A stretch of DNA of 64,000 bases from NCBI GenBank assembly GCA_004431415.1, contig QPMI01000496.1:496001-560000 (forward strand). The letters run 5' to 3'. Below are positions 17,560 through 63,895 of the stretch, piece after piece (positions within the stretch are counted from its first letter, which is position 1; each line of letters starts with the position of its first letter). The translations under genes were made by a program, and so were the position numbers. The stretch comes from Cyanophora paradoxa CCMP329. Its lineage: Eukaryota > Plantae > Glaucophyta. Below the pieces are notes generated by a model, which saw only the letters and a program-made list of their open reading frames with translations, did no database searches and was not told the origin of the DNA.

Positions 17560-17924
17560 CGACCCCCGAGGACGCGAAAACGAGCGCCGGGGGGGAACGG
17601 GGCCCGGCGGGGCTGGAGGGGGCAAAAGTGCGCCTGCCGGGACTCGAACCCGGGTCTCTTCGATGGCAACGAAGTATTCTACCCCTAGACCACAAGCGCT
17701 GATGGAAAACTCGAATCGCTTGCCCCGCCCGGGTCCGCCTGCGCCGGGGGTACTGCCGCGCGGGCGCTCGGCTTAGCTAGCGGCGGCATCGTTGCATACG
17801 CGACCGCAGGCTAGCCCAGGTTGACCGGAACCGGCCGCGAACGCGCACAGCGAGCTTCGCGTCGGCGAGCTCGGACGAGCGGGAGCGCGAGGGCCCATGC
17901 TGAAGATTCGCGTCTCCTGCGAGG
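17560..17924. repeat. Left arm of a near-identical about 365-bp inverted duplication (partner 26672-27035)
   Basis: Reverse-complement match covering the tRNA, its upstream region and ATGCTGAAGAT[T/C]CGCGTCTCCTGCGAGG; weaker similarity extends to about 17484. Confidence 0.95.
17629..17699 (-). tRNA. tRNA-Gly(GCC)
   Basis: GCGCTTG...CTTCG-TTGCCAT-CGAAG...GGTTCGAGTCC...CAGGCGCA cloverleaf, 71 nt, followed by TTTT (Pol III terminator). Confidence 0.96.
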
Positions 17925-17987
17925 AACGACGTAGCGCCTAGAAGCAGTGAGACCGCAGTCAGCCAGCGCAAGCACGCTTCTGCGGCA

Positions 17988-20297
17988 ATGGCGCCGGCTT
18001 TCGTCGCGCTGGTCCTGGCGGTCCTGCTGTTCCGGCTGGCTATCTCTGCCACGCTCCTGCAGACGTACTTCAACCCGGATGAGTACTGGCAAGGTCCGGA
18101 AATCGCGCACCGCCTTGTCTACGGGTGCGGCCCCTGCGAGCTCGCGCGCGTACGCCCGATCGGCGAGCGGCTCGCCCAGGTACGGCTACGAGACATGGGA
18201 GTGGCGTGCGGCGATCCGCAGCTACGCGCACCCCACGCTCCTCGCACTCGCGTACCGGGCTGCCGAGCTCGTCCCGGGGCGGCCGGAGTGGCTCGTGGTG
18301 CGTGCGGGCCCCGCTAGCGCCAGCGGCGCGGCCGCCCCCACGGTCCGACGGCCGACCGCAGATCGAGGCGCCTCGCATCCTGCACGCCGCGCTCGCGGCC
18401 GTCGCCGACGTCCACGTTTCCCTCCTCGCCCGCCGCCTCTTCGGGCCCGCCGCCGCGCGCTGGACCATATCCTCTGCCCCGCCCGCCGCTGCCCGCTGCC
18501 CGCGGCCCGCCTCCCGCCCCGTTGCGGCTGCCTTGACCCCCTCGGCGCACCTCTTCTGCCAGATGACGCTCTGGTTCAACGCATTCGCTCTCCAGCGCAC
18601 CTTCTCCAACTCCCTCGAGGCCGTCCTCACGGCCGTCGCCGCCTCCCTGTGGCCCTGGCCTGGCGTATCCCGCACCCCGCACTGGCGCGCCCCGTTTTTA
18701 CTTTTCCGTCGCTCGTTCGCCTCCCGTCGGCGCGCCCTGACGGCGGCGCGGCGCAGGCGCCGGGACCGCGCGCTGGCCGCCGGGCTCGCCGCGCTCGCGT
18801 TCGTCGTGCGGCCGACGGCGGTGCTGCTGTGGGTCCCGCTGGGCGCCGCCCACCTCCTGCGCGCATCCGACCCCGCCCGATTCGTCGGCGACGTCGCCCT
18901 CGCCTCGTGCGCCCCTCCAGGGTGAACAGTCGCCCCGCTCTGCCGTCACTGATCACTCTCCGCAGGGGAACGGTCCTCTCGGCGACCGCTCTGCTCGATC
19001 GGGCCCTGTACGGCCGCTGGGTCCTCCCCCCACTCGAGTTCTTCCGCTTCAACGTCCTCCGCGGCGGCTCGGCCGCCTACGGCACCCACCCCTGGCACTG
19101 GTACCTCTCCCAGGTACGCCCCGTACCCCCCTGCCCTGCCCGCGGACCGCACCCGAGGCGCTGACCGCGCGGCAGGGGGGCCCGGCGGTGCTTGGGACAC
19201 AGCTGCCCCTCGTGCTCGCGGGCGCCAGGCTCGCGGGCCCCGGCCGCCGCTGGCCTGCGACCGCCGCCGCCCTCGCCGCCGCCGCCCTCTCCTGCTTCGC
19301 CCACAAGGAGTTCCGGTTCGCGTACCCCTCTTCCCCAGGCCTCGCACGATTTGATCCGCGGGGCAGGTTCCTGCTCCCCCTCATCCCCCTCGTCCTCCCC
19401 TACGCCGGCCTAGCCCTGGAGCGGGCCGCCCGGGCCGCTTACCCCCCGGCCAAGAAGGAGGGCGAGGGCGGGGGCGAGGGCGAGGGCGAGGGCCGGCGGC
19501 GCCCCCACCTCCGCCTCCGCCGCGCCGGTCTGGCCCTCCTCGTGTTCCTGCTGGTGGGCACCAACGCGGGGGCGGCGGGGTACCTCGGCCTCGTCCACCA
19601 GCGCGGGGCCGTCGGCGTCGTCGACTGGCTCCGCCGCGCCTCGCCGCCGCCCACCGCTGTCCACTTCCTGACACCGTGCCACTCTACCCCCCACTACGCG
19701 TCCCTGCACCGGCCCATCCCCATGCGCATCCTCACCTGCGACCCCAAGTGCGCCTCCTCGAGTTCGATTCAGTCCGGCTCCGGTTGTTAAACTGACGCCG
19801 TACCCCAGCTGGCAGGGCCTGAACCGTACGTGGCGGCAGGAGCAGGACGCCTTCTACGCGCAGCCCCTCAACTTCCTGCGGGGGTACTACGAGGGCGGCG
19901 CGCACGCCATCGGCCAGGCCCGCGCCCTGAACGCCTGGCGCTGCCTCGACAGCGCCGTGCACGGCCCGGAGCTGCCGGGGGCGCACCCCTGCGAGGCCTT
20001 CGCGGGGAAACCGCTACCCCCCGAGCCCGTGCCCTCCCACCTGGTCCTGTTCGACGACGGTATCCTCCCCATCGGCATCAAGCCCTTCCTCGACTCCTTC
20101 GGCTTCCGCGAGGCGCGTAACCCCGTACCCCCCTGCGTTTGAATTCGGCCGACCTCGGACCGCAGTGCGCGCGGCTGCGGCACGCGGACTACGTGCTGGA
20201 GTCGCGCCTGGGGAAGGAGGTCCTCGTCCTCTGCCGCCGGGTGGAGCGCGAGCGGCGGGCGCCCCGCAAGAAGAAGGGCAGCGAGGCGCGAGCCTAG
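17988..20297 (+). CDS. PIGB: GPI mannosyltransferase 3 (PIG-B/GPI10, GT22)
   Basis: QTYFNPDEYWQGPEIAHRLVYG, TWEW..IRSYAHP, RTFSNSLE, VRPT, YGTHPWHWYLSQG, HKEFRFLLP, HQRG, LTPCHSTP motifs in spliced exons. Confidence 0.95.
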
Positions 20298-20578: not shown

Positions 20579-22385
20579 ATGTCTAGCGGCGAACGTAAGA
20601 GAAAGGAGCCGCCTGTGAGCGACCTCGGGGCAAGGAGAGGCGCAAGGAAAAGACCCCTCTCCGTTCTTCGATCGGCTGCCCGATGCGATCCTCGTGAAGA
20701 TTTTTGAGATCTTGGGAGTGCAGCGCGCGGCGGCCGCGCGCGCGGTCTGCGGCCGCTGGCGCGAAGTAGCCGAGACGATCCTCTGGCGCTCATTGGACGT
20801 GGAAGTCCAAAGCGTCAAGGGCGCTGATCTGCTCTGCGGTCAGCTGGTCGGGGCTGGCGATGGCCGGCGGTGGATCCTCGTCGTCCCTGGCTCGTCGCTT
20901 CGTCTGCGGGGAGCGCAGGTTGCTTCGGCGGTCATCTCTTCCGTTCTGTCGGCATGCACGGCCGCGAGCGGCGGCCTCGGCGAGGTCGATGTGGAATGCA
21001 ACGTGTACGCGAATCTCGCCGGCCTTCGGATCGGGGAGCTGCTCGGCGCCCTCGTCCCGCGGGGAGCCGCCGAGTGCCCCGCGCTGCGCAGCCTGTCCTT
21101 GAGGAGCCGGAGCTCGTACGCGCGCGGCGAGAACTCGTTCTTCGCCACGGCCGCGGACGACCTGGCGGACCTCCTCCGCCCTTTCTCGCGCCTCGAGCGC
21201 CTCGTACTCCCGGCCTGCTGCGCCGCCGATCGGGACTCCGCCTACGCCCTCGCCCGCGGCGTCCCGCGCCTCAAGCGGGTGCGCCCTCGAGCTTCAGCTC
21301 TCCCCCGCGCCCTTCCCCCCCACGCTCAGACCGGCTCGGCAGCTGGAGATCGCGCAGCGGAACGCGGAAGCGGCGAGGGGCCTCGCCTCCTTCCCGCGCC
21401 TCGAGTCTCTCTGCCTGAGGAGCCCGGACGACGGGCCGGCCCTGCCTCTGATCGGGGGCCTCGCCTCCGGGCCCCTCGCTTCCGCCCTGAAAGAGTGCGC
21501 GCGCGGCCCTCGATTGCTGTGCCGCGCGCCGCCGACTCGCCCGCGGCCGCAGGCTCCGAATCGACTACAGCCTGTGCCTCACCCCCGACGATCTGCGCGC
21601 CCTGCCGGGCCTCTCCGCCCTGCAGGCCCTCCGGGGGCCCTTCAGGGTCCGGCCCCCCCCCCCCCCCCCCCCCCCACCCCCCCCCCCCCCGGCCCCTCAC
21701 TGGGTACCCCCTGTCCTTCAGCTTGATTCGGACGTGGGGGGGGAGGACCTGGCGCCCCTGGGCTCCTGCCCCGCCCTCCGCAGCCTCGGGCCCCTCGACG
21801 CGTACCCCCAGGCCTGGTGGGGGAGCGACAGGCACCTCGCCGGCCTCCTCTCGGGCCTCGCGGCGGCCCTCGCGGCATCCCCCGCCCTCGTCGATGTCAG
21901 CCTGCGCTTCAGTGCGCGCCCCTTTCCCAGCTTTCCTTTCCCTCGTCTTTTCCTCACGCGGGAGCAGGCCTGCCGGTACCCCCGTTGGCGCTCGCTTCGT
22001 TCGCGGAGCTGGCCGGCGCGGCCCTCGGGCGCCTCTCGCTCGAGATGGAGGTCGACCTCGCGCCGGGGCGCCCCGCGGAGGTCGCCGCGGCGCTGGCCGA
22101 AGCCCCGCCGCGCCGCCTCGCCCTCACGGCCGGCGTCGACGAGGGCGCCCTGCGGGACGGGCGGCTTGACGGCCTCTCCGCCTTCGCCGGCCGCTGCCCC
22201 CAGGACGACCTCAAGGTCCGCTCAGGGCCCTCCTCCCCGCCTTAGGCCCTCCCCGCAACCCCCCGCAGGTCCGCCTGCGCCTGGGGCGGGGCGTGGCCCC
22301 GGAGGCCGCGCGGGCGGCGGCTGCGCGGGTCCTCCCCTCCGCCCGCCTTCAGCTCGCGATCGCCGTCCAGGACGTGCATGCGTAG
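20579..22385 (+). CDS. F-box-like / LRR-like protein
   Basis: FFDRLPDAILVKIFEILG...RAVCGRWREVA; CPALRSLSL, FSRLERLVLP. The ATG at 20579 needs a small intron to reach this frame, so the start is uncertain. Confidence 0.65.
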
Positions 22386-26699: not shown

Positions 26700-27035
26700 G
26701 GGCCCTCGCGCTCCCGCTCGTCCGGGCTCGCCGACGCGAAGCTCGCTGTGCGCGTTCGCGGCCGGTTCCGGTCAACCTGGGCTAGCCTGCGGTCGCGTAT
26801 GCAACGATGCCGCCGCTAGCTAAGCCGAGCGCCCGCGCGGCAGTACCCCCGGCGCAGGCGGACCCGGGCGGGGCAAGCGATTCGAGTTTTCCATCAGCGC
26901 TTGTGGTCTAGGGGTAGAATACTTCGTTGCCATCGAAGAGACCCGGGTTCGAGTCCCGGCAGGCGCACTTTTGCCCCCTCGAGCCCCGCCGGGTCCCGTT
27001 CCCCCCGGCGCTTGTTTTCGCTTCCTCGGGGGTCG
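26672..27035. repeat. Right arm of the inverted duplication (partner 17560-17924)
   Basis: Reverse complement of the left arm; includes the start codon of the CBM20 phosphatase gene. Confidence 0.95.
26897..26967 (+). tRNA. tRNA-Gly(GCC), identical to the copy at 17629-17699
   Basis: Same 71-nt sequence followed by TTTT. Confidence 0.96.
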
Positions 27036-34200: not shown

Positions 34201-37200
34201 CGGGAAGCGCGCGAGGGAAGGTCGTGTTCATCGAGGAACAGTCGATGCCCTTTTTGCACGGCGCGCACTGCCCGAACTCTGAGAACGCCTCTCCCCAGTA
34301 GCCTGCCCCGGACCGTCGGACTGTCCTTAGTGCGGGCTCGAACGCAGTTGCAATCACGAAGCAACTGACCGGAGGAGCACACGCATTGAGCTATCGAGGC
34401 CGCCCCCAGCAGCGCTGTCGTGGAGCCGTTTATGCACTTGTTACATCGCGTCTGATTCGTGAGCGGTTGGTACTCCCCGATCGGGCACAGGCTACATCTG
34501 GCGTCCTGCCCCGAAAGGGACACCGTCCCCGCAGCACACGGCCGACAGGAATCTAATAAATGCAAGCGCAAAGTTAATATAATAGTCCTGGTAACCGGTC
34601 ACTGCCACCAAACAACGTGCCTCTGTACGTGGATTGATATGACCCCGGAGGACAGGCTGAGTGCGATTGCAGTGTCGGATTTCGCAAGCGAGCGCTTATT
34701 GTTAGTATAAAGCTTTGCTACTCGCACCTGTGTAGAGCAGCGAGAACGTGGCGGAGTAAGGGCTCGCAAATGGAGCGCTAGCGATCGACGCGTCCCCGTC
34801 ATAGGTCACAGTCAAATTGCCAGTTCCGGGAGGATGGCCGTCCCTGTAAGTTCTGCTCGCACCCGCGAGCGTTCTCTCATTGTGATTTCAGTACGCATTC
34901 GATTGTGAGCACCTGCATATAATCCGTGTGCTCGACTCAAAATCAGAGATCACTTTATAAAAGACTCCTTCGGGGCTCGAGAAGAAGCACGGCATGCCGC
35001 GGACGAAGCGCTCTCCAGAGATGGTCACAGCTTGCCCTCCGATGGTGGAAAGTTCGAGTGGGATTGCAGCAGTAACCACGAACGGCTCTGGAAGAATGCA
35101 CATGTATTAGATTCACGAATTTAGAACACGTCGCAATCGATTCGAGCTTCAATTTGCAAACAGCGAATCGAGAAGAAAGAGAGCGCATGCGCACCGACCA
35201 CAACCAGCACGGTTGAAGAATTCGAGTATACAGAATTCGAGGCGGATACGAGGACTCTGTACGTTCCTGGATTCGACCACTGGTATGACAGAGCGTTCAA
35301 TGCCTCTTCGCCTTGGTACATGCTTGGCTTCTGCGATGCCGGGTCCGGATCGAGGATCTGAACGGAGAACCTGAGGGATCCTCCGCCGGAGGCAGCCGGC
35401 TTGAAGCGCAGCGCGTCCCGAAAGGCGACGACGGCGGACAGCGCCGGCGCCGTGGAGTTCACTTCGTCGAGCACGGTCATGCCGAGGCCGGCGATGAGCG
35501 GCTCGACGCGAACCGCCTGGCTCGCGCTCTGCGAGCTCAGATCGTTCCGCACAGTGACGACGACGACGACATCGCCAGGCGTGGCGAACTGGTGTGAGTG
35601 CCGAAGTCCGCTGGTGGTGACGTTCGCCTCGTCGCCAAAACGCCACTCGACGGACAAGGATGAGCCCCTCTCTACGAAAGCCACTGCTTCGAGGGCGCTG
35701 GCGATGCCGATCTTCGCTGGAATCTGCAGCTGAAGTCCTGCGATGGGCACCTGCGAGTCCGCATGCAGCGCGCTCTGCAGCGCAACCGCAGTCCCGCCCG
35801 CTTGGGCCGTAAGGGCGAGTCGAAAACGGCCTGCTGGCGGAGCTGTGAACGCGAATGTGAAGAAGTCGGCGAAACCGGCGGGCGAAAGAGCCAGCAAAGG
35901 TGGCGGCTGCTGCTGCAGCGCTCGTCGGGATTCCGACGCCACTAACGTCAGTGCGAAGTACGAAGAGTGCGCGTGAATGGCTCGGCCTCCCCTCCTGGGC
36001 TCCAGAGTGCAAGAAACTTCAGTCTGCGCCTCGAATGCGGTCCGATTGCCGCAAACAGTTGTAGATTCGTCGGGCTCATCTGACAACAAAAAGTCAGATC
36101 TCTTACATGCATGGTGACGGCGCGACAGCGATGAGCGCATGCCGCAGCGCGTGCTCACCAACAATGACGGCATGGTACTCTACGCGCGCGAAGCTCGAGG
36201 CGGACGAGTCGAGAGGATCTCCCAGGCGCACGGGGAGCGCCAGAACGAGGTCGCCGGTCCCAAGGCCGGTGGCCAGCGTGAAGGTGTGCAAGTCTCGGGG
36301 GAATCCGTCGGCCGGGGCGGCCCACGATTCCACGCGGGCTCCGACAGATCCGTTGCCTGCAAGCGTGATGTCTCCAAAGGACTGGAACAGCGCGAAAATT
36401 CCTCCTCCGTCCCTGACATTCTCTTAGGATTGCTGGGCATTGCGCAATTGGAGCTATTTGGCGTGCACCTGCGAGGAATAATGGAGCACAATATGCTTTT
36501 CCTTGCCCGCAACAAGCGACTGCCGTCTAGCATCGAGTCATTGCAAACAATCGTGGTGCTGTTGTCAGGAGCATCTGCACATCGGCGCGTTAGTGTTGCG
36601 ATGCCCCGCGGAAGAAATTGGATCTATGAAACGACGTACCGAAAACCTGAAGCGCGCAGGTGTCGAACGCTTGCGGTTCAACGCCTGCCGAGAATGATCT
36701 CAAGCTTGCAGGGCCTGTCAGCAGGTCCGCTGTCGGCAAGGAGAGCGCGATCGTCTGCGACGGATAGGGGCGATCGTCCCGCAGGAAGACTCCCGGAGAG
36801 CGGCCGCCTCGCGCGCCGAAGTCGACGCTGAGGTTCCCGACGGTCGAGGAGCCGGCAGCGGGCACGGCGACTCTGCCAAACGCCCAAGGCACCGTGTCCA
36901 CGGCCAGCCCCGCGCGCAGCGCCCGGTAATCGACGTCAATGGTCGAGGTCGGGCTGCGAAACACGAGAGGCGCCGGGCAGATGGCCTCGCTGGTGCTGTC
37001 TGGAAGTTCATAAACTGTGAATGCGCTTTCCAGGGTCGCAAAAAGGCCCGCAGGCTTGCGTGCGACTCTTAGCGTGCCCGAGCCGGAAGTATTTGCCAGG
37101 ATTTGAATTGCAAAAGAATTTCCTGTGGCTGTAGATTGCGGCTGGTCCAAGACCTGAAGTTTGTCCGTCAGCTGCAGCAATTTAATGTGCGCTGGAATAA

Positions 37201-55686: not shown

Positions 55687-56108
55687 CCGTGCGGCGTACG
55701 CGGCGCACTGCGAGGAAGTGGAAATCTAGAGGAGATCGAGCAAGACAGCTAGGGAGAATTTCTACGAAATTCCGTGCGGCGTACGCGGCGCAGTGCGAGA
55801 AAGTGGAAATCTAGAGGAGATCGAGCAAGACAGCTAGGGAGAAGTGGTTCCATGCAGAACCGCGCAACGAAGAGCAAGGCGTACGCGACGCACTGCGAGG
55901 AAGCCGAAATCTACAGGAGACAGCTAGCTATAGGGAGAACTGGTTCCATGCAGAACCGCGGAAGGAATTCGAAGACCGGAATGAGAGAGAAGTTGGTTTC
56001 CAGGCTTCAAGTCGAGGAAACTGGTCTCCGCTAGAACCGCGGAAGGAATTCGAAGACCGGAATGAGAGAGAAGTTGGTTTTCAGGCTTCAAGTCGAGGAA
56101 AACTGGTC
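55687..56108. repeat. Compound tandem repeat: 85-bp period unit x2 (plus a degenerate third) followed by an 81-bp period unit x2
   Basis: CCGTGCGGCGTACGCGGCGCA...CAGCTAGGGAGAA at 55687 and 55772; AGAACCGCGGAAGGAATTCGAAGACCGG...GAGGAAA at 55952 and 56033. Confidence 0.9.
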
Positions 56109-56678
56109 TTCGCCCTCGAAAACCTTTTTTTGCATGGACGGCCGCAGCGACAAACACGTGTCGCTGCAACAGAATTTCGGCCCATTTTTTTCCCGCGTTG
56201 CATACTGGACCTCGAAAACGGCCTCATAGAAGAATTTTGGCTGAAGCGAGGGAACGGGAAGCAAGGGGGGAAGACCTTCGGTCTTCTTTCCCCCCTTGCA
56301 ATAAACGTTAATATGCATCGCCAAGTAGAGTATATCTATTCGCAAGCGAGGCGCAGATATTCGAAAGGGCTGTGCTGTTCTTGGTTTTGCGAACATGACG
56401 TCTCAGATGTGTTGGGGGGGGGGGGGGCTAGTGTTCGTGATCATGAGTGGACACCGGGGGGAGGGGGGGGGGGGAAGGGGCAGGGGCCGGGCCGCCGCGG
56501 GCGGGCGGCCGCGGGGTCTGGGTGACCGGGGCACACGGCTGGGCTGGGCTGGAAATCGAGGGGGGACATATGCATGTGGAATGCGTCTCATTTACAAAGA
56601 TTGAATATTCGGAGACAAAGATATCGGGGACAAACCTATTCGGAATATTCGGGGAGATCTAGAGACAAACGATAAGAG

Positions 56679-57563
56679 CTAATTGAAAGCCTCAGCTATT
56701 TGGAGCGCAGCTTCTGCGTTGAGCACCTCGCCGTTCATAAGTTTCCTCAAGGCCACTACATGCCTGCCAGCGAGATTTTAGAAGCTGTCAGAGATAAAGA
56801 GTAATATGAATTTATTGTCACCCGCTGAATGAGCTGTTGAGAACTTGCAGCATATTCCACACCACGGGCTTAATGTTAGCCGCTTTGCCGAAGTCGGTGC
56901 AGATCTTGAATCGCACTTCTCCATCCTTGAGGTCCATCTGAGTTCGTACACGCGAGTCAAACTGCCGTCAGATCCTTCCTTCAAGTGGGGAGTGCCCGCT
57001 TAAGCTCGAGTGAAGCAGCGAGACGCACGCACCTCCAAGTTTCCGCAGAGCATATCGAAATTCGCGCGAACGAGGTATTCCGTCACGATTGGCCGCTTGT
57101 GTTCGGGGATCTACGCGCACCGCGCATTAATATTATTTCCTGTTCGCGACACCAATAATCAATTAACACGGACCGTGAAGTCCGCGATACCGTACAGGAT
57201 AACCTGATGATTATGAAATATGAGCGTAATATATCAGCAATATACAGCATTTAGGGGGGCCCAGCGGCTGAAACGCGCGGCGCATGACCGGCATTACCGA
57301 TGTTTGCTCTTCTCGACAAAGCATGGCAACAACGTAGGCGCCCTCATTCTTAGGCATCTCGAACATCGCCACGATTGTTTTGTCATCCTGCGCTATATAG
57401 TTCATATGCATATGCATGTGGGAAGACCTGTACTATGATACGCGCTCGCCCGCAGCTTGAGAGATTACACGAAAGCGCTGGCAGCAAGCTCGAGAACCTT
57501 GGGAATGAACTTCACGTTCTTGCTCTGGAGAAGCTGCTTAATTTGTTCAGTGTAGCTCGGCAT
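56679..57563 (-). CDS. Stand-alone YbjN-like domain protein (T3SS-chaperone-like fold), 6 exons
   Basis: Spliced: MPSYTEQIKQLLQSKNVKFIPK/DDKTIVAMFEMPKNEGAYVVAMLCREEQTS/VILYGIADFT/IPEHKRPIVTEYLVRANFDMLCGNLE/MDLKDGEVRFKICTDFGKAANIKPVVWNMLQVLNSSFSG/HVVALRKLMNGEVLNAEAALQIAEAFN*. Matches the YbjN-family pattern (PxxKRxxxxExxxRANxxxxxGNxExDxxDGEVRxK) as I recall it. Confidence 0.8.
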
Positions 57564-59065
57564 TGCGGATTGTTCAGTGTATATAGTCTCTGTCGAGCGC
57601 AAGGCTTCGCTGTTCGTGTGCGTGGCTCCGCGGCTGTGTTTCGTCTGCCTGGCTGGGGTATCCCAGCGTGTGGTAGCCCGCGACGGCGCGCAGGCCTGAG
57701 CCTTGAGGCCCTGAGGAGCGGCACTCGCTTGAAGGATGTGCCGTACCACTTCGAATTGTAGGCTACGACTCTAGCCTATTAGTCAAACGGTCCCGGGTCC
57801 GTAGTACCGTACTACGGTACGGCAGCCCGCGACGGCGCCCGCGGGGGCCGGACTCCGGGGATCCGGAGCTCGAGTACTGTATACTATATATATATGGTAC
57901 CATACTTTACTACAGTAGTACGAGACTGTAGAAGTCACTCAAGTCAGTGCTAGTCACTGAGTCACTGTACCGTACGCGTAGTACTCAGTACAGATCTAGA
58001 CCGTCGGACGGACCGTCGACGGTACTACCGGGTACTCCGCCGCCCGGGCCGGGAGTCCGGGTCCCCGGGACTCCGGCCCAGTCCGAGTCTGTCCGACGGT
58101 CTCCGGGTCACGGCCCCACGGGTATCCCCGCCGATTCTCCGGACTATACCGTAGTACCGCACTACTAGTATTAGTACGACTCGGCGACTGCACACTGTGC
58201 ACAGTAGTATGTACTGTAGTACTGTATGTACGACGGTATACCGTAGTACGACAATACTACGACTGTACTACGGTACACCGTGGCACTGTGACAGCCTATA
58301 CTAGCAAGTTACCGACCGTCGGACAGCCATGGCCAGCCGGCACCTGACGGTCCGATGACAGGTATTTGCAATTTTGAGTTAATTCTCCTAATTCGGGTTT
58401 AAATGTCCGACGATCACCTGATGGTAAGTTACCGTAGCGCACCGGCCAATCGTGATCTGCTGTCACCTGAACCTGCTTTTTAGCTTCGATTCAACCGTCG
58501 ATCAGTGATCCAGACCGTCGGACAGTGACCATGAAAATCAGAACCTGATGATCAGCCTGTGACTGTTTTCACAGCGGCGATTTGCCTATTGGCCCGGAGG
58601 GCCGGAGTCACCACTGACTCACCAGGTGGCTCAGTGACCAGGCAGAATCCTGGCCGTGCCGCGGGCCACGGACCACGGTGGCAGTGGCAGATCCAGTGTC
58701 TGATCCACAGGACAGTGGCAGGACTCCAGTGTCACTCCACTGCCAGTGGCAGCCAGTCTCCAGCCTGCAGCCTCCACTGGGCCACTGGCACCCACTGCCA
58801 GGCAGTGCCAGCGGCCGGGCCCGGCGGTCTGCCGCACCAGCGCCGGTCCAGCGGCCAACTGGTGCTTCATAATAAAAGTTTATATAATTTCCTGTCACCT
58901 GACCTATTTTTTCCTTGGCCAAATAGTTGACTCGTCGATCGTTTCCTTTTTTCCGTAATTATTAACGTTGACTTGTTGACTCTGGCCGAGTCCGCCGGGA
59001 CTCCGCCCCCAATCGGGCCCCATGGCCAAGTTTGGGGGCAACTTGGGGCCCGGGGCCCCAACGTA

Positions 59066-59294
59066 CCGTAAAACACAATATTAAGGTCTGCACTTTATTA
59101 TAGACATAATAGGAAACGACATAATAGGGCGTGCTTAGTCTTACCCCCCCAATTTACCGCCCCATACAAACCTGAAAATTTCGTGACGACATATAATTTG
59201 GGGGTGTCATATTTTGCATAGAGAAGGGTCCGGTTTTATAACGGCATAACTTAGTAAATTTGACCGTCATATTATTGTGTTCCGAGTTCTACGG
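59066..59294. mobile_element. Second Tc1/mariner-superfamily-like MITE
   Basis: TA|CCGTAAAACACAATA...TATTGTGTTCCGAGTTCTACGG|TA; AT-rich interior, no ORF. Confidence 0.7.
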
Positions 59295-60003
59295 TACGCA
59301 TCATGGCATGCAGCGTCACGGCCCGACTCACGGGTCCAGCGGCTCCGGATCCAGCCTGGCAGCTTTCGGGCTCCACTGATTATAATTATCAGCCTCCAGT
59401 ATATATTTTCCTGTCCAATATTTTCGAGGGGGCACTCAGTGACTGGGCAGTGGGCACTGTGGCGGCAGTGCTGCTGCCACTGCCTGCCAGTCTGCTAGCC
59501 GGCGCCCGCCTGCCGGCGTGCTGCTGCAGTGGCACGGTGCCACGGTAGTGGGCAGCCTACGTACCAACATACTATACTTATAGTAGCTAGGCCTGACCCT
59601 CGGGCCTCGGGCCCTATGAGTCCCCCCGATTCATGACTCAGGGACCGGGCCCGGACTCAAGACTCGAGACTCCAAGCTCAGGACTCAGGAGTCAGGACTC
59701 AGGAGTCAGACTCAGGACTCAGGAGTCAGGACTCAGCTGCAGCCTGCACTGCAGCCTGCAGGCTTCAGCTCAGCCTACCAGCGGCTGTAGGTTGTTTCGA
59801 GGACCGAAGATCAGGAAATTTAGGCCCTTAGGCCTGCGAACGCTAACTGGGCAGGGCGCTACAGCACACTCATCAGCGCAACTCGGCAGCGCCGCCCGTC
59901 GCCAAGGTTCGGCTGCAACGTTTATTCCAGCCTCCGATCGCAAGTTACAATTGCAAGCTTAAGCCTGCGCGCGTGTACCAGGGTTGCCGAGCCTGCTTCG
60001 TAA

Positions 60004-63000
60004 ATGGCGGACGACTCGTGCTGCAATTCCTGCTGTTGCTGTTGTTCCGATGAGGAGCCTCCCGTGAGGAAGCAAGCGTATCAGGCGCCGGCGGCGGCCT
60101 CAATACATGCTTCTCCTGCGTATACACCTGCACCGGCACCCGCCGCTCGCGCTGCACCGGCACCTGGAGTAAGTTATATATATACATATACTCCCAGCGT
60201 TGTCCGACGGTCTGCAGCTGATCATGACATGTGCATGTTGCACCAGATTGCGCCGGCGCCGTTGCAGATGGTTGCCCCCCGGGCGACTGCAGTCGTGAAG
60301 CCTTCGGATGTGCAGGTCCAGCTTCCGGATCCGGGGATGGTGCCAACCAGCGTCGCAATCCCAGCGGCATTCTCTAAGCGCCGGGCATTCATCCGGAACG
60401 TCGCTGCCATCGAGCGCTACCTCAAGGAAACTGAGGCGCGCTTGCAATCGCGCATTACGGCACTGTAGCACATGTACACGTCCTTCCAGATTTTGCTCTG
60501 ACACTGCCGCGGGATGGATGCGACAGGTGAAGTATGACTCGGCCGAAGTCGACGCCAAAAAGTACTACGGGCCTGGAATACGCTTCTCGGCTAGCTTCTC
60601 CGCAGAGGCGGGGCGTTTTCGAGCTGACTATTACTGCCGTGCCAGAAGCGCGAGTGAGGTGCGCGTATTCCTTCATAATCATATAATGCCGATGTTGGCT
60701 ACACGCGCTTATTTGTCACTCCGCAGGAAGATATTGGTGTAGTCATTCACTTTCTTAATAGCGATGGGAGCTCCGTCAGTGCCAGGAGCGATGATGACAA
60801 AGCCAAGACAGCTGTTGCGTGTGCTCTGGCCAATTTCGGGCTTCTTTACGGAGCATTTCACAGTGATCTGCGGGACGGTGCGCAAAATTCATGATCAATG
60901 CATTTGCCATCTTCAGGTACAAAGTGTTTTAAATTCTGAGTCCGCGGGCCTGCAGGTGAAACGAGCTTCTCATACTGGGTGCCCATGACGGGCGTCGATG
61001 ACGATCGCGATGCGATGGAGATTGTCGGTCGAGCTTTTGAGAGATCGATTCGGATTTTCCAGGAATATCACGAGGTTTGGGTTTTTATCAATAGAATTGT
61101 GTCAATGCGCCAGCGCTCACATATACATGCACATATCCGCATTCGTAGACATTCCGCAAACTCCTATTATCGAGCTCTGCGAGGTGAATACTCTCGAATT
61201 GCGCTACGAGGCCGCGTGACCGAAACTGATCTCCGGATCCTACCGTGGCTTCTTAGCGGGAGAGGAAAGACTGTTTTTGAGATTGTGAAAGGATTTGCTG
61301 CGAAGTTCGCGCGATCCGACATTGAACAGAAGTTCGATGTCGACGAGCACCTGGCTATCGCCTTCGTCATCCGAGGAGATGGATATGCGTTCAAATCCTG
61401 TGCGTTCTCCATTTATTCATACAACTATGTGCATTCGCCATTTTCGTTTTCGATCATCTTATTTTCAGCACAGTTGTGCGTGTTGAAGAACGCCAGACGC
61501 ATCTCTTTATCCAATTCGCAGCTGTCGCGCAAGAGACGGTGCAAGCATTTTTATGCAGTCTCACGACACCGACTTTCGTTCAATTGCAAGTTGATTACAT
61601 GTCGAACAGGTCGAAGATCCGCGATGGAGGATGACCATCGCTCGCTTCTGTTGCCTCGCGAATCACAATCTCCACCGCGGAGCTGTTAAATTCGATATGC
61701 GTGATGGCGAGGTATGTTCAGCTCGGATCTAATCTATTCTCGAAACTTACGTGCAAGCGTCCTCACAGATGGCGTTCACGAACACGGTAGCGCTAGGAGG
61801 CGTGCCGGACGAGGATATAATTCATTACCTGCAGCCGCTTCTGGCCACCGGAATAAGTGCGTGCAGTTGAGATATATCTTAATGAAGATGGCATTGTAAA
61901 AAGCTCGCAGCAACCGCGGCCCGGTACTTCCGGGGGTTGCGGATGATTTTGCACGAGGGCAAATCGCCAGACGACGCTTGCGAGATCTGCGATCGCTGGA
62001 GCCCGGAGAGCTCGAGCTCTGCGGAGAGCATACTCGCGAAGGCCTTGATGCTCGGCTTTCTGCAGCAACTCCTGGAGCAAGGCGGCGGCCTGCGCGACCA
62101 CCTGCCCCATCAACCGGCGGCGGCAGCCGCGCCGCAACGAGCTCCCAAGGACGTCGCCAAAGCCGCACAGCTCCGGCGCACCCAGTCGAGGGCGCACGAG
62201 TTCAACGAGCACCTCCGGCACACAGATATCTTCAAGAAGATTGAGGGTATAGATCACCCAGGTCTTATTCCCGTATCGCACCTTGAAGTTGATTTCAACA
62301 ATGAGAGGTACAGGAGCGCTTATATAATTAATATTATTATCATTGAGCGATGCGATACACTCGTGCATACAAATTCGGCAGGAATCGTCTTGGTAAAGGA
62401 GGTATGGGAGAAGTCTTCAGAGGGTTTTACAAACGATCGCCGGTTGCTGTCAAGCGGGTCCGTTCGATGACAGCGCCGCAACTGGTTGTTTCCTACGGAT
62501 TCTTACATTTTCGCCGTCTGCAATATATAGATTACTGGGGGCGAAGTTGACACTTTCAAAAAAGAATTGAATCTGATGAGGTGCCATATCGATCATGACA
62601 TAAATATGAATACCCTCGTTCACGTGCACGAGCACTTGATTGATTATCAGTTGCACAACGCAGCAAAATTTCCTTCCCTCACATCGTTCAGGTTTGGATT
62701 TCGGACCAGTTTCTTCTGCATATGCGTATTAAAAATGATAATTCGTTATTCGTATATATGGCGAGCCGTTAGACTCGTATTCAATCGTAATGCCGACCAT
62801 CGTCGCAGTTCTACGGAATTGCAATCAGTGGCCGAGATGTTCTTCTCGTTTGCGAACTCTGCGAAGGTCAGATTTATTTGGAGTTGTCCGTTGCAATTAG
62901 CGTATTCACATTGATATCTGACGTTGGGGGCAGGAGGGAGCATTGATGCATTTTTGGACGGGGCCAACTCTGCGAACAAAGATTTCGACTTACGCAGGCG

Positions 63001-63895
63001 CATCGCAAAGCAATCAGCCCAAGGCATGGCTTACCTTCACAGCCTCAACATTGTCCACTTTGATCTGAAAGCAGCAAATATTCTGGTGTTCAGATCTCAT
63101 TACCGATCTAGATGTTTCTGCTAATTTAACATTCTTGCAGCTCACGCGGGACTACTCGGCAAAAATCGCTGATTTGTGCGCCCCTTATTGCAGCACATGC
63201 CACCTTATCGATATCGGCTTGTCCTAGAAGCTAACTCATGACGCACGCGAAAAGTGGTTTGAGCAAGGTCGTCAACAACACGGGGGTGACCGAAGTCCTC
63301 GGCGGGACGATCACGCACTTGCCGCCTGAGGTGATGAGGGGTGAAATGGCCGGCCCCCCAGCGGATGTCTACTCCTGGGCTCTTGTCTTCTGGCAGGTCT
63401 GCCCAGTCTGTGAGCTCCGACGCGGGCCCCGTTCGGCTCTGACGCGGACCCGTTCGGTATTCTCCCTGCTGCGTCTGCCATTGACTGCGGACCGGATGTA
63501 GCTCTTGACAGGTGAGCGGGATCTGTGGAGGGAAGAGTTGGCGCGATTCCTGGCGGAGCATGGCGAGCACGCACATCCTCTCCTTTTCCGTGAGTTTGCT
63601 CTCCCTGTGTGCGTATCTTGGCTCGAGGCGTGTGTCACTATTGTGCGCAGATCGGTATTTCCAAGAGAAGGTCATGCTTCAGCAGCGGCGGCCTCCGATC
63701 CCGAAGAACTCGTCTGTTCCCCTCGAATACTTCCGATTCCTTGAGGTTACTGTTATTCAAGCGTAGCACCTTCTCTTACTCTAACTCTGGCAATCATCGC
63801 AGGATTGCTGGCAGGACAATCCCAGCCGACGTCCCACATTCGATCAAATCGTGGACAAGCTCGAAGCTCTCGAGGAAAAATATCCCACCCGTTAA
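60004..63895 (+). CDS. Poly-Cys N-terminus + two YbjN-like domains + tyrosine-kinase-like (TKL) protein kinase, about 20 exons
   Basis: MADDSCCNSCCCCC; domain 1 ALANFGLLYGAFHSDLRDGETSF; domain 2 RMTIARFCCLANHNLHRGAVKFDMRDGEMAF...RYFRGLRMILHEGKSPDDA; kinase LGKGGMGEV, VAVK, FPHIVQFYG, GMAYLH, HFDLKAANIL, KIADFGLSK, GTITHLPPE, DVYSW, CWQDNPSRRPTF; stop TAA 63893-63895. Confidence 0.82.

Follow-up and report, generated by a model that had tools for sequence, protein, structure and literature searches.

Does this locus of Cyanophora paradoxa join a bacterial type of domain to a eukaryotic protein kinase, and is the small gene beside it a free copy of the same domain? The window, i.e. the whole stretch of 64,000 nucleotides that was analyzed, harbors two genes in divergent orientation that lie 2.4 kb apart, a small gene (S) at 56679-57563 on the minus strand and a fusion gene (F) at 60004-63895 on the plus strand (Table 1). 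The best overall explanation, to which we assign a probability of roughly 0.5, is that F combines tandem orphan domains with a TKL kinase in one gene, accompanied by the single-domain neighbor S, and that it serves as a partner-sensing kinase.

Hand splicing of F yielded 18 exons encoding 816 codons without an internal stop. The reading frame extends from the ATG at 60004, which is immediately preceded by an in-frame TAA, to the TAA at 63893-63895. Its 17 introns are 46-185 nt long with GT..AG borders, which are found in 21 of 21 introns of S and F together. The initial annotation had described a continuous plus-strand frame carrying two signature copies followed by a complete kinase, and this is borne out by the 816 open codons and by exon 9, which bridges the two parts. 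The intron claimed at 61184-61256 is part of the model as well, with the flanking 35-nt exon 5 as a model choice. A single 397-nt exon runs from the last part of repeat 2 into the first part of the kinase, so that the fusion can be read straight from the DNA. For the junction of exons 1 and 2, a 25-nt GT..AG intron and a GC-AG intron at 60460-60526 were set aside in favor of a canonical 127-nt intron at 60400-60526. The chosen intron joins ..IRN to VKY.., parallel to ..SKN VKF.. in S, and is still a model choice. Contigs of three DNA runs, contiguous across the introns, showed no base differences over the compared stretch; the only deviations were three indels of a single base, each seen in one contig of low depth. 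Judged from its sequence, F is a nuclear, intron-rich gene joining two copies of an orphan domain to a complete TKL kinase, and represents a real sensor-kinase variant that is probably functional.

Table 1. Exons of the two divergent genes and the region between them (positions in the window).
Feature	Position	Strand	Content and remarks
S exon 1	57471..57563	-	ATG; putative N-terminal helix, ...SKN VKF...; donor GTGTAA
S exon 2	57298..57387	-	beta-rich, TIVAMFEM..AYVVAMLCRE; borders CAG / GTAATG
S exon 3	57033..57110	-	first half of signature, ..RANFDMLCGNLE; repeat-profile positions 17-24
S exon 4	56822..56937	-	second half of signature, MDLKDGEVRFK..; repeat-profile positions 28-34
S exon 5	56679..56763	-	C-terminal helix; stop codon inside
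Divergent intergenic region	57564..60003		2.44 kb; low-complexity repeats, GGACTCA x12 at 59653-59736
F exon 1	60004..60399	+	Cys-rich N-terminus (CCNSCCCCC), Pro/Ala-rich linker; 60400 as donor is a model choice
F exon 2	60527..60658	+	N-terminal half of repeat 1
F exon 3	60727..60877	+	signature of repeat 1 (ALANFGLLYGAFHSDLRD-G); z 8.7 in comparison with exon 7
F exon 4	60956..61074	+	repeat 1, post-DGE strand and C-terminal helix
F exon 5	61149..61183	+	35-nt micro-exon, uncertain; alternative is in-frame read-through 61075-61256
F exon 6	61257..61428	+	N-terminal half of repeat 2; residues 6-16 helical in a fragment model of poor quality
F exon 7	61610..61711	+	repeat 2 signature (CLANHNLHRGAVKFDMRDGE)
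F exon 8	61769..61856	+	repeat 2, post-DGE strand and start of C-terminal helix
F exon 9	61911..62307	+	397 nt, open; end of repeat 2, ~90-aa linker, kinase start; physical fusion point
F exon 10	62382..62484	+	kinase Gly-rich loop (GKGGMGEV), VAVK lysine
F exon 11	62531..62623	+	kinase helix C (FKKELNLM)
F exon 12	62809..62866	+	kinase strands 4-5 (FYGIAIS..LVCELCE)
F exon 13	62934..63085	+	catalytic loop HFDLKAANIL (non-RD); PF00069 36.4 bits, PF07714 35.3 bits
F exon 14	63141..63175	+	KIAD-F of DFG motif; Phe codon split
F exon 15	63255..63396	+	GLSK.., activation segment, PPE, DVYSWALVFWQ
F exon 16	63502..63589	+	kinase C-lobe, LLTGERDLW..
F exon 17	63651..63745	+	kinase C-lobe, ..RRPPIPKN..
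F exon 18	63803..63895	+	DCWQDNPSRRPTF.., TAA stop; PF07714 positions 238-258

The kinase is TKL-like, catalytically complete by sequence and of the non-RD type, with HFD replacing HRD. The catalytic-loop exon alone exceeds the cut-offs of PF00069 (31.7 bits) and PF07714 (23.1 bits), and three further kinase exons gave weaker, collinear matches to these families. The catalytic residues read GKGGMG, VAVK, FKKE, HFD, N, DFG (across a splice junction) and PPE, and all are intact except the R of HRD. The best solved (PDB) matches of the catalytic-loop exon were A-Raf, C-Raf, LIMK1 and B-Raf, ahead of DAPK1, and the C-terminal exon of F matched the end of PF07714. These nearest solved structures and the C-terminal match place the predicted kinase in the TKL group. 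As in Raf, CTR1/EDR1-like kinases and LIMK, a Raf-like catalytic domain with a CW..P..RP.F tail is located at the C-terminus. F also shares the layout of TKL kinases with N-terminal sensor or adaptor modules, consisting of a modular N-terminal domain, a linker and the kinase. It differs from them by an N-terminal module that is orphan in sequence and occurs twice, and also by its HFD catalytic loop, its Cys-rich N-terminus and the adjoining free paralogue-like gene. IRAK1 and plant XA21/FLS2-type receptor kinases are non-RD kinases of innate immune signalling. Like these, F contains no Arg before the catalytic Asp, but neither a receptor ectodomain nor a death domain or LRR was observed in it.

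The gene structure and the kinase residues bear on the alternative of a silent or decaying locus, or of an erroneous hand-built model, in which case the repeats and the kinase would be separate genes or a pseudogene. The initial annotation had proposed one transcript across 60004-63895, and none was found in 17 contig-level runs guessed to be RNA. In a word search confined to F, each of these runs contained about 0.00 of the words, and nothing aligned when one run was mapped to the locus. The low GC3 of 0.61, compared to an overall GC of 0.72 in the first half of the window, would also fit this alternative, as would the uncertainty of the exon 1/2 junction and of exon 5. However, little weight attaches to the absence of the locus from RNA runs at contig level. 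The open frame is maintained over all exons with canonical intron borders, the catalytic residues are preserved but for a single Arg, and a single exon bridges repeats and kinase with no in-frame stop between them. A silent locus or a wrong model is quite improbable.

The N-terminal half of F, which precedes the kinase, has a Cys-rich tip, followed by a Pro/Ala-rich spacer and by two domain copies of ~120-130 aa in tandem. Both copies harbor an 18-residue signature, AN-x5-G-x4-D-x2-DGE, which a six-frame regular expression search located in exactly three places of the window: the matches at 60829-60879 and 61658-61711 in F, and a third one in S with DLKDGE at 56917-56934. The signature exons of repeat 1 and repeat 2 are highly similar (z 8.7, p<0.0005), and the exons after the signature are similar with a p of 0.02. 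In exon-wise alignments the N-terminal halves of the repeats showed no measurable similarity to each other or to S. The demonstrably repeated part of F is only the ~50 residues around the signature. Structure prediction for a 57-aa fragment from exon 6 gave a poor model (pLDDT 51, fragment query), in which only the first helix was predicted.

S was spliced by hand into five exons with GT..AG at every intron border, giving 153 codons without an internal stop. This agrees with the ~150-aa spliced minus-strand protein of the initial annotation. Its further claim, that the locus holds three copies of one domain, stands for the signature, which is present at all three sites, but not for the rest of the domain, as similarity of S to the repeats is measurable in the signature only. 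This common part is divided by a splice junction, with the peptide RANFDMLCGNLE followed by MDLKDGEVRFK crossing from exon 3 into exon 4. It is unlikely that S is unrelated to the repeats and that the signature match across the junction arose by chance. Such a coincidence would be in line with the exon-wise ranks of the two S pieces, which came just 28th and 37th when 1803 pieces of the window were scored with the repeat profile, and with the remaining S exons, which beyond the signature showed no significant alignment to the repeats. However, the two pieces are on adjoining exons and match adjoining halves of the profile in order, and exactly at canonical splice sites they become gap-free and collinear over profile positions 17-27 and 28-34. 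In addition, S and F are neighbors and their domain lengths agree.

It is plausible that the orphan domain belongs to the bacterial YbjN/secretion-chaperone type. The YbjN family (PF10722), which includes E. coli YbjN, Erwinia AmyR (5FR7), Deinococcus DR1245 (4H5B) and a cyanobacterial protein (2PLG), is part of clan CL0097, which unites type III secretion chaperone-like families, and both family and clan are predominantly prokaryotic (PMC13466201). YbjN, AmyR and DR1245 comprise 150-158 aa and have the topology a-b-b-b-a-b-b-a (PMC3575483, PMC5398634). S with its 153 aa corresponds to this length, and a single domain of ~150 aa is a trait it shares with the family. The order of elements was read by eye as helix / V-K-[YF] / strand-strand / helix ending in N / hairpin-DGE / long helix. 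This apparent order resembles that of the family, in which a helix is followed by three strands, a helix with a conserved Asn end, a beta-hairpin and a long C-terminal helix. The spacing N-x10-D-x2-D, a pattern selected and relaxed after the data were seen, occurs in 110 of 120 enterobacterial YbjN sequences as well as in both F signatures, in agreement with the enterobacterial branch. In the window translation of 118,828 aa it was found at just 6 places, two of which are the F repeat signatures. The D-x2-D part of this spacing sits in a loop that is unusually long in AmyR compared to most YbjN proteins (PMC5398634). Domain size, order of secondary structure and residue spacing are no more than suggestive signs of YbjN.

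Family searches did not recover the YbjN membership claimed in the initial annotation. Exon by exon, neither a Pfam hmmscan (E<=10) nor NCBIfam gave a match to PF10722 or YbjN, and exon searches of PDB profiles returned antibody and repeat-protein noise only. The profile queries were single exons of 26-71 aa and HMMER filters drop weak matches, so the power of these searches was low. With hhalign, the exon alignments reached probabilities of 0.2% and 0.1% against a narrow alignment of 16 enterobacterial YbjN sequences with 32-84% identity to E. coli YbjN. E. coli YbjN as seed returned close enterobacterial relatives only, and the plasmid search reached Aeromonas at the farthest, which limited the breadth of the YbjN profile. 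The locus also differs from the family in that it is eukaryotic, is interrupted by introns, carries the domain in tandem on a kinase and gave no profile or sequence match.

Wider searches gave a similar picture. HMMER with the region 60940-61686 (exon 4 and exon 6 in one open frame, no signature exon) returned 0 matches among 1.84 billion representatives, not even the locus itself. The signature exon of repeat 1 gave no candidate in a word-indexed search, and a tblastn search of plasmids with the repeat 2 exon gave two chance-level matches to hypothetical proteins. Scanning bacterial genomes with a 50-aa exon yielded 600 pattern sites, 0 of which were confirmed. In these exon-wise searches of little power, the repeat domain appears as a sequence orphan with no detectable relative in any of the databases searched. 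For the proposed horizontal or endosymbiotic origin, no bacterial relative or donor emerged from HMMER, word search or genome scan.

The negative searches fit the alternative that the repeat domain has a fold specific to this lineage and not related to YbjN or secretion chaperones, that F is one more TKL kinase with assorted N-terminal modules, and that the likeness to YbjN is a short-motif coincidence. The same genome contains other sensor-TKL fusions, namely GAF-TKL and ALIX-TKL, and the short extent of the demonstrable repeat points in the same direction. However, single exons of 26-57 aa were compared with a family that is known to lack an overall consensus (PMC5398634), and size, element order and spacing agree with YbjN. 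A lineage-specific fold is a possibility to be taken seriously, though not the one we favor.

TY-Chap1-3 are TY-chaperone domains in bacterial conflict systems, and TY-Chap2 has two domain copies per protein (PMC9503650). If the YbjN-type fold assignment holds, F resembles these proteins, by description and not by sequence, in having a chaperone-like peptide-binding module in a signalling or defence context. Unlike the algal F, they are bacterial and phage proteins of ADP-ribose systems.

If F is a partner-sensing kinase, as we prefer to read it, the two tandem domains might form a built-in pseudo-dimer that grips an extended stretch of a partner protein, and whether this site is occupied would determine how active the attached kinase is or which substrates it chooses. 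This working of the tandem pair is a tentative and rather doubtful proposal. Being non-RD, the kinase may act independently of activation-loop phosphorylation. The Cys-rich tip could anchor F to a membrane through S-acylation, and S may compete with or complement the binding surface of the tandem pair. The roles put forward in the initial annotation, a pseudo-dimer sensor with the co-regulated free gene as adaptor or inhibitor, or a decoy for bacterial secreted effectors, are likewise speculative. A long shot is that F represents the first eukaryotic tandem YbjN/type III secretion chaperone-like pseudo-dimer on a non-RD TKL kinase, accompanied by a free paralogue of one domain within a low-GC island that borders TIR genes. 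Such a protein would be a putative innate-immune sensor that catches extended peptides, for instance from bacterial effectors, and responds through phosphorylation.

Should the repeats adopt the YbjN/secretion-chaperone fold, a predominantly prokaryotic scaffold would enter the kinase signalling of eukaryotes. Within its clan, YbjN is both the most widespread and the least understood branch, and the fusion, if true, would give a functional clue to it in the form of partner capture with a readable output. Even with a new fold, the locus would add a duplicated orphan sensor module to the mix-and-match TKL kinases of this glaucophyte. In addition, it points to a gene island of unusual composition that has neighbors of immune type.

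Judged from its sequence, the plus-strand fusion gene F encodes a putative sensor-kinase whose N-terminal module is a sequence orphan present in two copies. The gene model comprises 816 codons without an internal stop, begins at an ATG directly preceded by an in-frame TAA and contains 17 introns of 46-185 nt, all with GT..AG borders, including the intron at 61184-61256 proposed in the initial annotation. At the junction of exons 1 and 2 a canonical intron (60400-60526) was chosen; the helix-like ..IERYLKETEARLQSRIT.. segment would be kept by either of two alternatives, a GT..AG intron of 25 nt and one with GC-AG borders. Exon 5 (35 nt) is likewise a model choice, as in-frame read-through of 61075-61256 is also open. 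The predicted protein starts with a Cys cluster (MADDSCCNSCCCCCS, 60004-60050) and continues with a Pro- and Ala-rich segment of about 100 residues. Both repeats and the kinase had been assigned to one reading frame, and the sequence bears this out. The 397 nt of exon 9 form one uninterrupted frame that leads from the C-terminal helix of repeat 2 into the region of the first kinase strand (..IPVSHLEVDFNNE), the Gly-rich loop and VAVK follow in exon 10, and no in-frame stop occurs between repeats and kinase. The fusion can therefore be read directly from the DNA.

Coordinates of the two genes and of other features in the window
Feature	Position	Strand	Basis
F, 18 exons	ATG 60004 to TAA 63893-63895	+	hand-built from sequence
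Repeat 1 signature (F exon 3)	60829-60879	+	six-frame pattern search
Repeat 2 signature (F exon 7)	61658-61711	+	six-frame pattern search
F exon 9	61911-62307	+	F model
S, 5 exons	57471-57563, 57298-57387, 57033-57110, 56822-56937, 56679-56763	-	hand-built from minus-strand sequence
S signature part DLKDGE	56917-56934	-	six-frame pattern search
tRNA-Gly(GCC)	17628-17699	-
tRNA-Gly(GCC)	26897-26968	+
Piece beside first tRNA	17703-17777	+	profile scores on translation
Piece beside second tRNA	26819-26893	-	profile scores on translation
Alg9-like/F-box-like genes	17947-19161, 20694-22166	+	PF03901 (Alg9-like)
PKD open frame	35121-36170	-	PF00801
Tandem duplications	55687-55843, 55952-56113
GGACTCA array	59653-59736

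By sequence, the kinase domain of F is a complete TKL-type, non-RD kinase, in agreement with the TKL assignment made initially. Single exons match PF00069 at 36.4 bits (cut-off 31.7) and PF07714 at 35.3 bits (cut-off 23.1), and three more exons give weaker, collinear matches, which take in the final 21 positions of the PF07714 profile. The best solved relatives of the catalytic-loop exon are A-Raf, C-Raf, LIMK1 and B-Raf. Sequence reading identified the motifs GKGGMG, VAVK, FKKE, HFDLKAAN, DFG, PPE and CWQDNPSRRPTF; the Phe codon of DFG is split by an intron, and the Arg of HRD is replaced by Phe (HFD).

The signature AN-x5-G-x4-D-x2-DG(E) occurs in the six frames of the whole window only in the two repeats of F. 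The signature exons of repeats 1 and 2 align with each other at z 8.7 (p<0.0005) and the exons directly following them at p 0.02, while exon-by-exon alignment of the N-terminal halves detected no measurable similarity. The small minus-strand gene S, which has GT..AG borders at every intron, is open over 153 codons and closed by a stop. The peptide quoted for it in the initial annotation was recovered across the junction of exons 3 and 4 (..RANFDMLCGNLE / MDLKDGEVRFK..). When the two F signature exons were combined into a profile and run against all 1803 stop-to-stop pieces of the window, the two pieces of S ranked only 28th and 37th. They nevertheless match profile positions 17-24 and 28-34; the exons that hold them adjoin each other in matching order, and joining these exons precisely at the canonical splice sites makes the two matches collinear without a gap. 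S is probably related to the F repeats, the signature being the only evidence for this. S has an intron six codons before DGE; in repeat 1 the intron splits the Gly codon, and in repeat 2 it directly follows DGE. Since these positions differ among the three copies, either the introns postdate the duplications or the duplications themselves are old.

The domain had been assigned to YbjN (PF10722), a family of the type III secretion chaperone-like clan, and none of the formal tests, all performed exon by exon, returned this membership. Neither Pfam (E up to 10) nor NCBIfam matched the domain, exon-alignment profiles yielded only noise against all PDB sequences, and hhalign against 16 YbjN sequences (E. 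coli, Proteus, Aeromonas and others), a narrow alignment rather than a broad YbjN profile, gave a probability below 1%. A HMMER search of 1.84 billion representatives with a 249-aa open stretch containing F exons 4 and 6 had zero matches, the signature exon of repeat 1 gave no candidate in a word-indexed search, and no relative turned up among 185,579 scanned genomes of bacteria and archaea. The power of these tests is low, because pieces of 26-71 aa were compared with a family for which its structural papers emphasize the lack of an overall consensus; DR1245 and AmyR share 10% identity (PMC5398634). Fold prediction of one 57-aa exon recovered the first helix only (pLDDT 51). Three features are suggestive of YbjN at the sequence level. 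S has 153 aa versus 150-158 aa in YbjN-type proteins. The elements discerned by eye come in an order (helix, V-K-[YF], two or three strands, helix ending in Asn, DGE hairpin, long helix) consistent with the a-b-b-b-a-b-b-a topology described for DR1245 and YbjN (PMC3575483). The spacing N-x10-D-x2-D, a pattern picked after seeing the data, occurs in 110 of 120 enterobacterial YbjN sequences; in 118,828 aa of translated window it was found just six times, and two of these occurrences are the repeat signatures. The loop that holds its Asp residues is described as unusually long in AmyR compared with most YbjN proteins (PMC5398634). We estimate the probability that the domain adopts a YbjN/type III chaperone-like fold at roughly 0.55-0.60.

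The clan is predominantly prokaryotic according to a 2026 review (PMC13466201), and no eukaryotic YbjN-kinase architecture was found in the literature searched. The horizontal or endosymbiotic acquisition suggested initially gained no support, as the HMMER, genome and word searches pointed to no bacterial or cyanobacterial donor. YbjN proteins, like class I chaperones, dimerize and bind their partner proteins along extended stretches (PMC5398634, PMC13466201). By analogy, the tandem repeats of F might act as an intramolecular pseudo-dimer and control the kinase according to its occupancy; being non-RD, the kinase would be regulated by this module and not by activation-loop phosphorylation. The CCNSCCCCC tip could be S-acylated and provide a membrane site, and the free S protein might either complete the binding surface or compete with it. 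This chain as a whole is tentative and less likely than not, and an immune or decoy role, argued partly from the non-RD kinase, is improbable.

Contigs of three DNA runs from one sample cover 56650-62649 (6 kb) with zero base differences. Only three single-base indels deviate, each confined to one contig of low depth; the one at 61055, a base missing within F exon 4 (run X3, depth 5.9), is probably a contig error, because the remaining runs match the window there. In contigs of all three runs, 57948-57968 is joined to 59749-59770 (21-nt stretches), skipping 1780 nt, before unlike sequence follows; longer contigs cross the region intact, and a dispersed short repeat is a more probable cause of the joins than a deletion allele. 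Each of the 17 listed runs presumed to be RNA contained about 0.00 of the words of the locus, which as contig-level data is weak evidence of silence, and one such run compared with the locus matched nowhere, so the locus has no transcript support.

The window is eukaryotic and intron-rich. Its GC content is about 0.72 in 1-28000 and 0.51-0.60 from about 32 kb to the end, where S and F are located (F exons 0.55, GC3 0.61, versus introns 0.475); this half may be a compositionally distinct gene island. It also contains a PKD domain (E 8e-13), and the long open frames adjoining it have no Pfam match. The GC-rich half harbors two ordinary eukaryotic genes with an Alg9-like mannosyltransferase domain (E 2e-23) and an F-box-like motif, and two inverted tRNA-Gly(GCC) genes about 9 kb apart. 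As the translated pieces adjoining the tRNAs have identical profile scores, their flanks appear to be duplicated too, and the arrangement looks like an inverted duplication. Downstream of S are two near-perfect tandem duplications (96-97% matches), one with an 85-nt and one with an 81-nt unit, and the heptamer GGACTCA is repeated about 12 times in the intergenic region shared by S and F, about 270 nt upstream of the F ATG.
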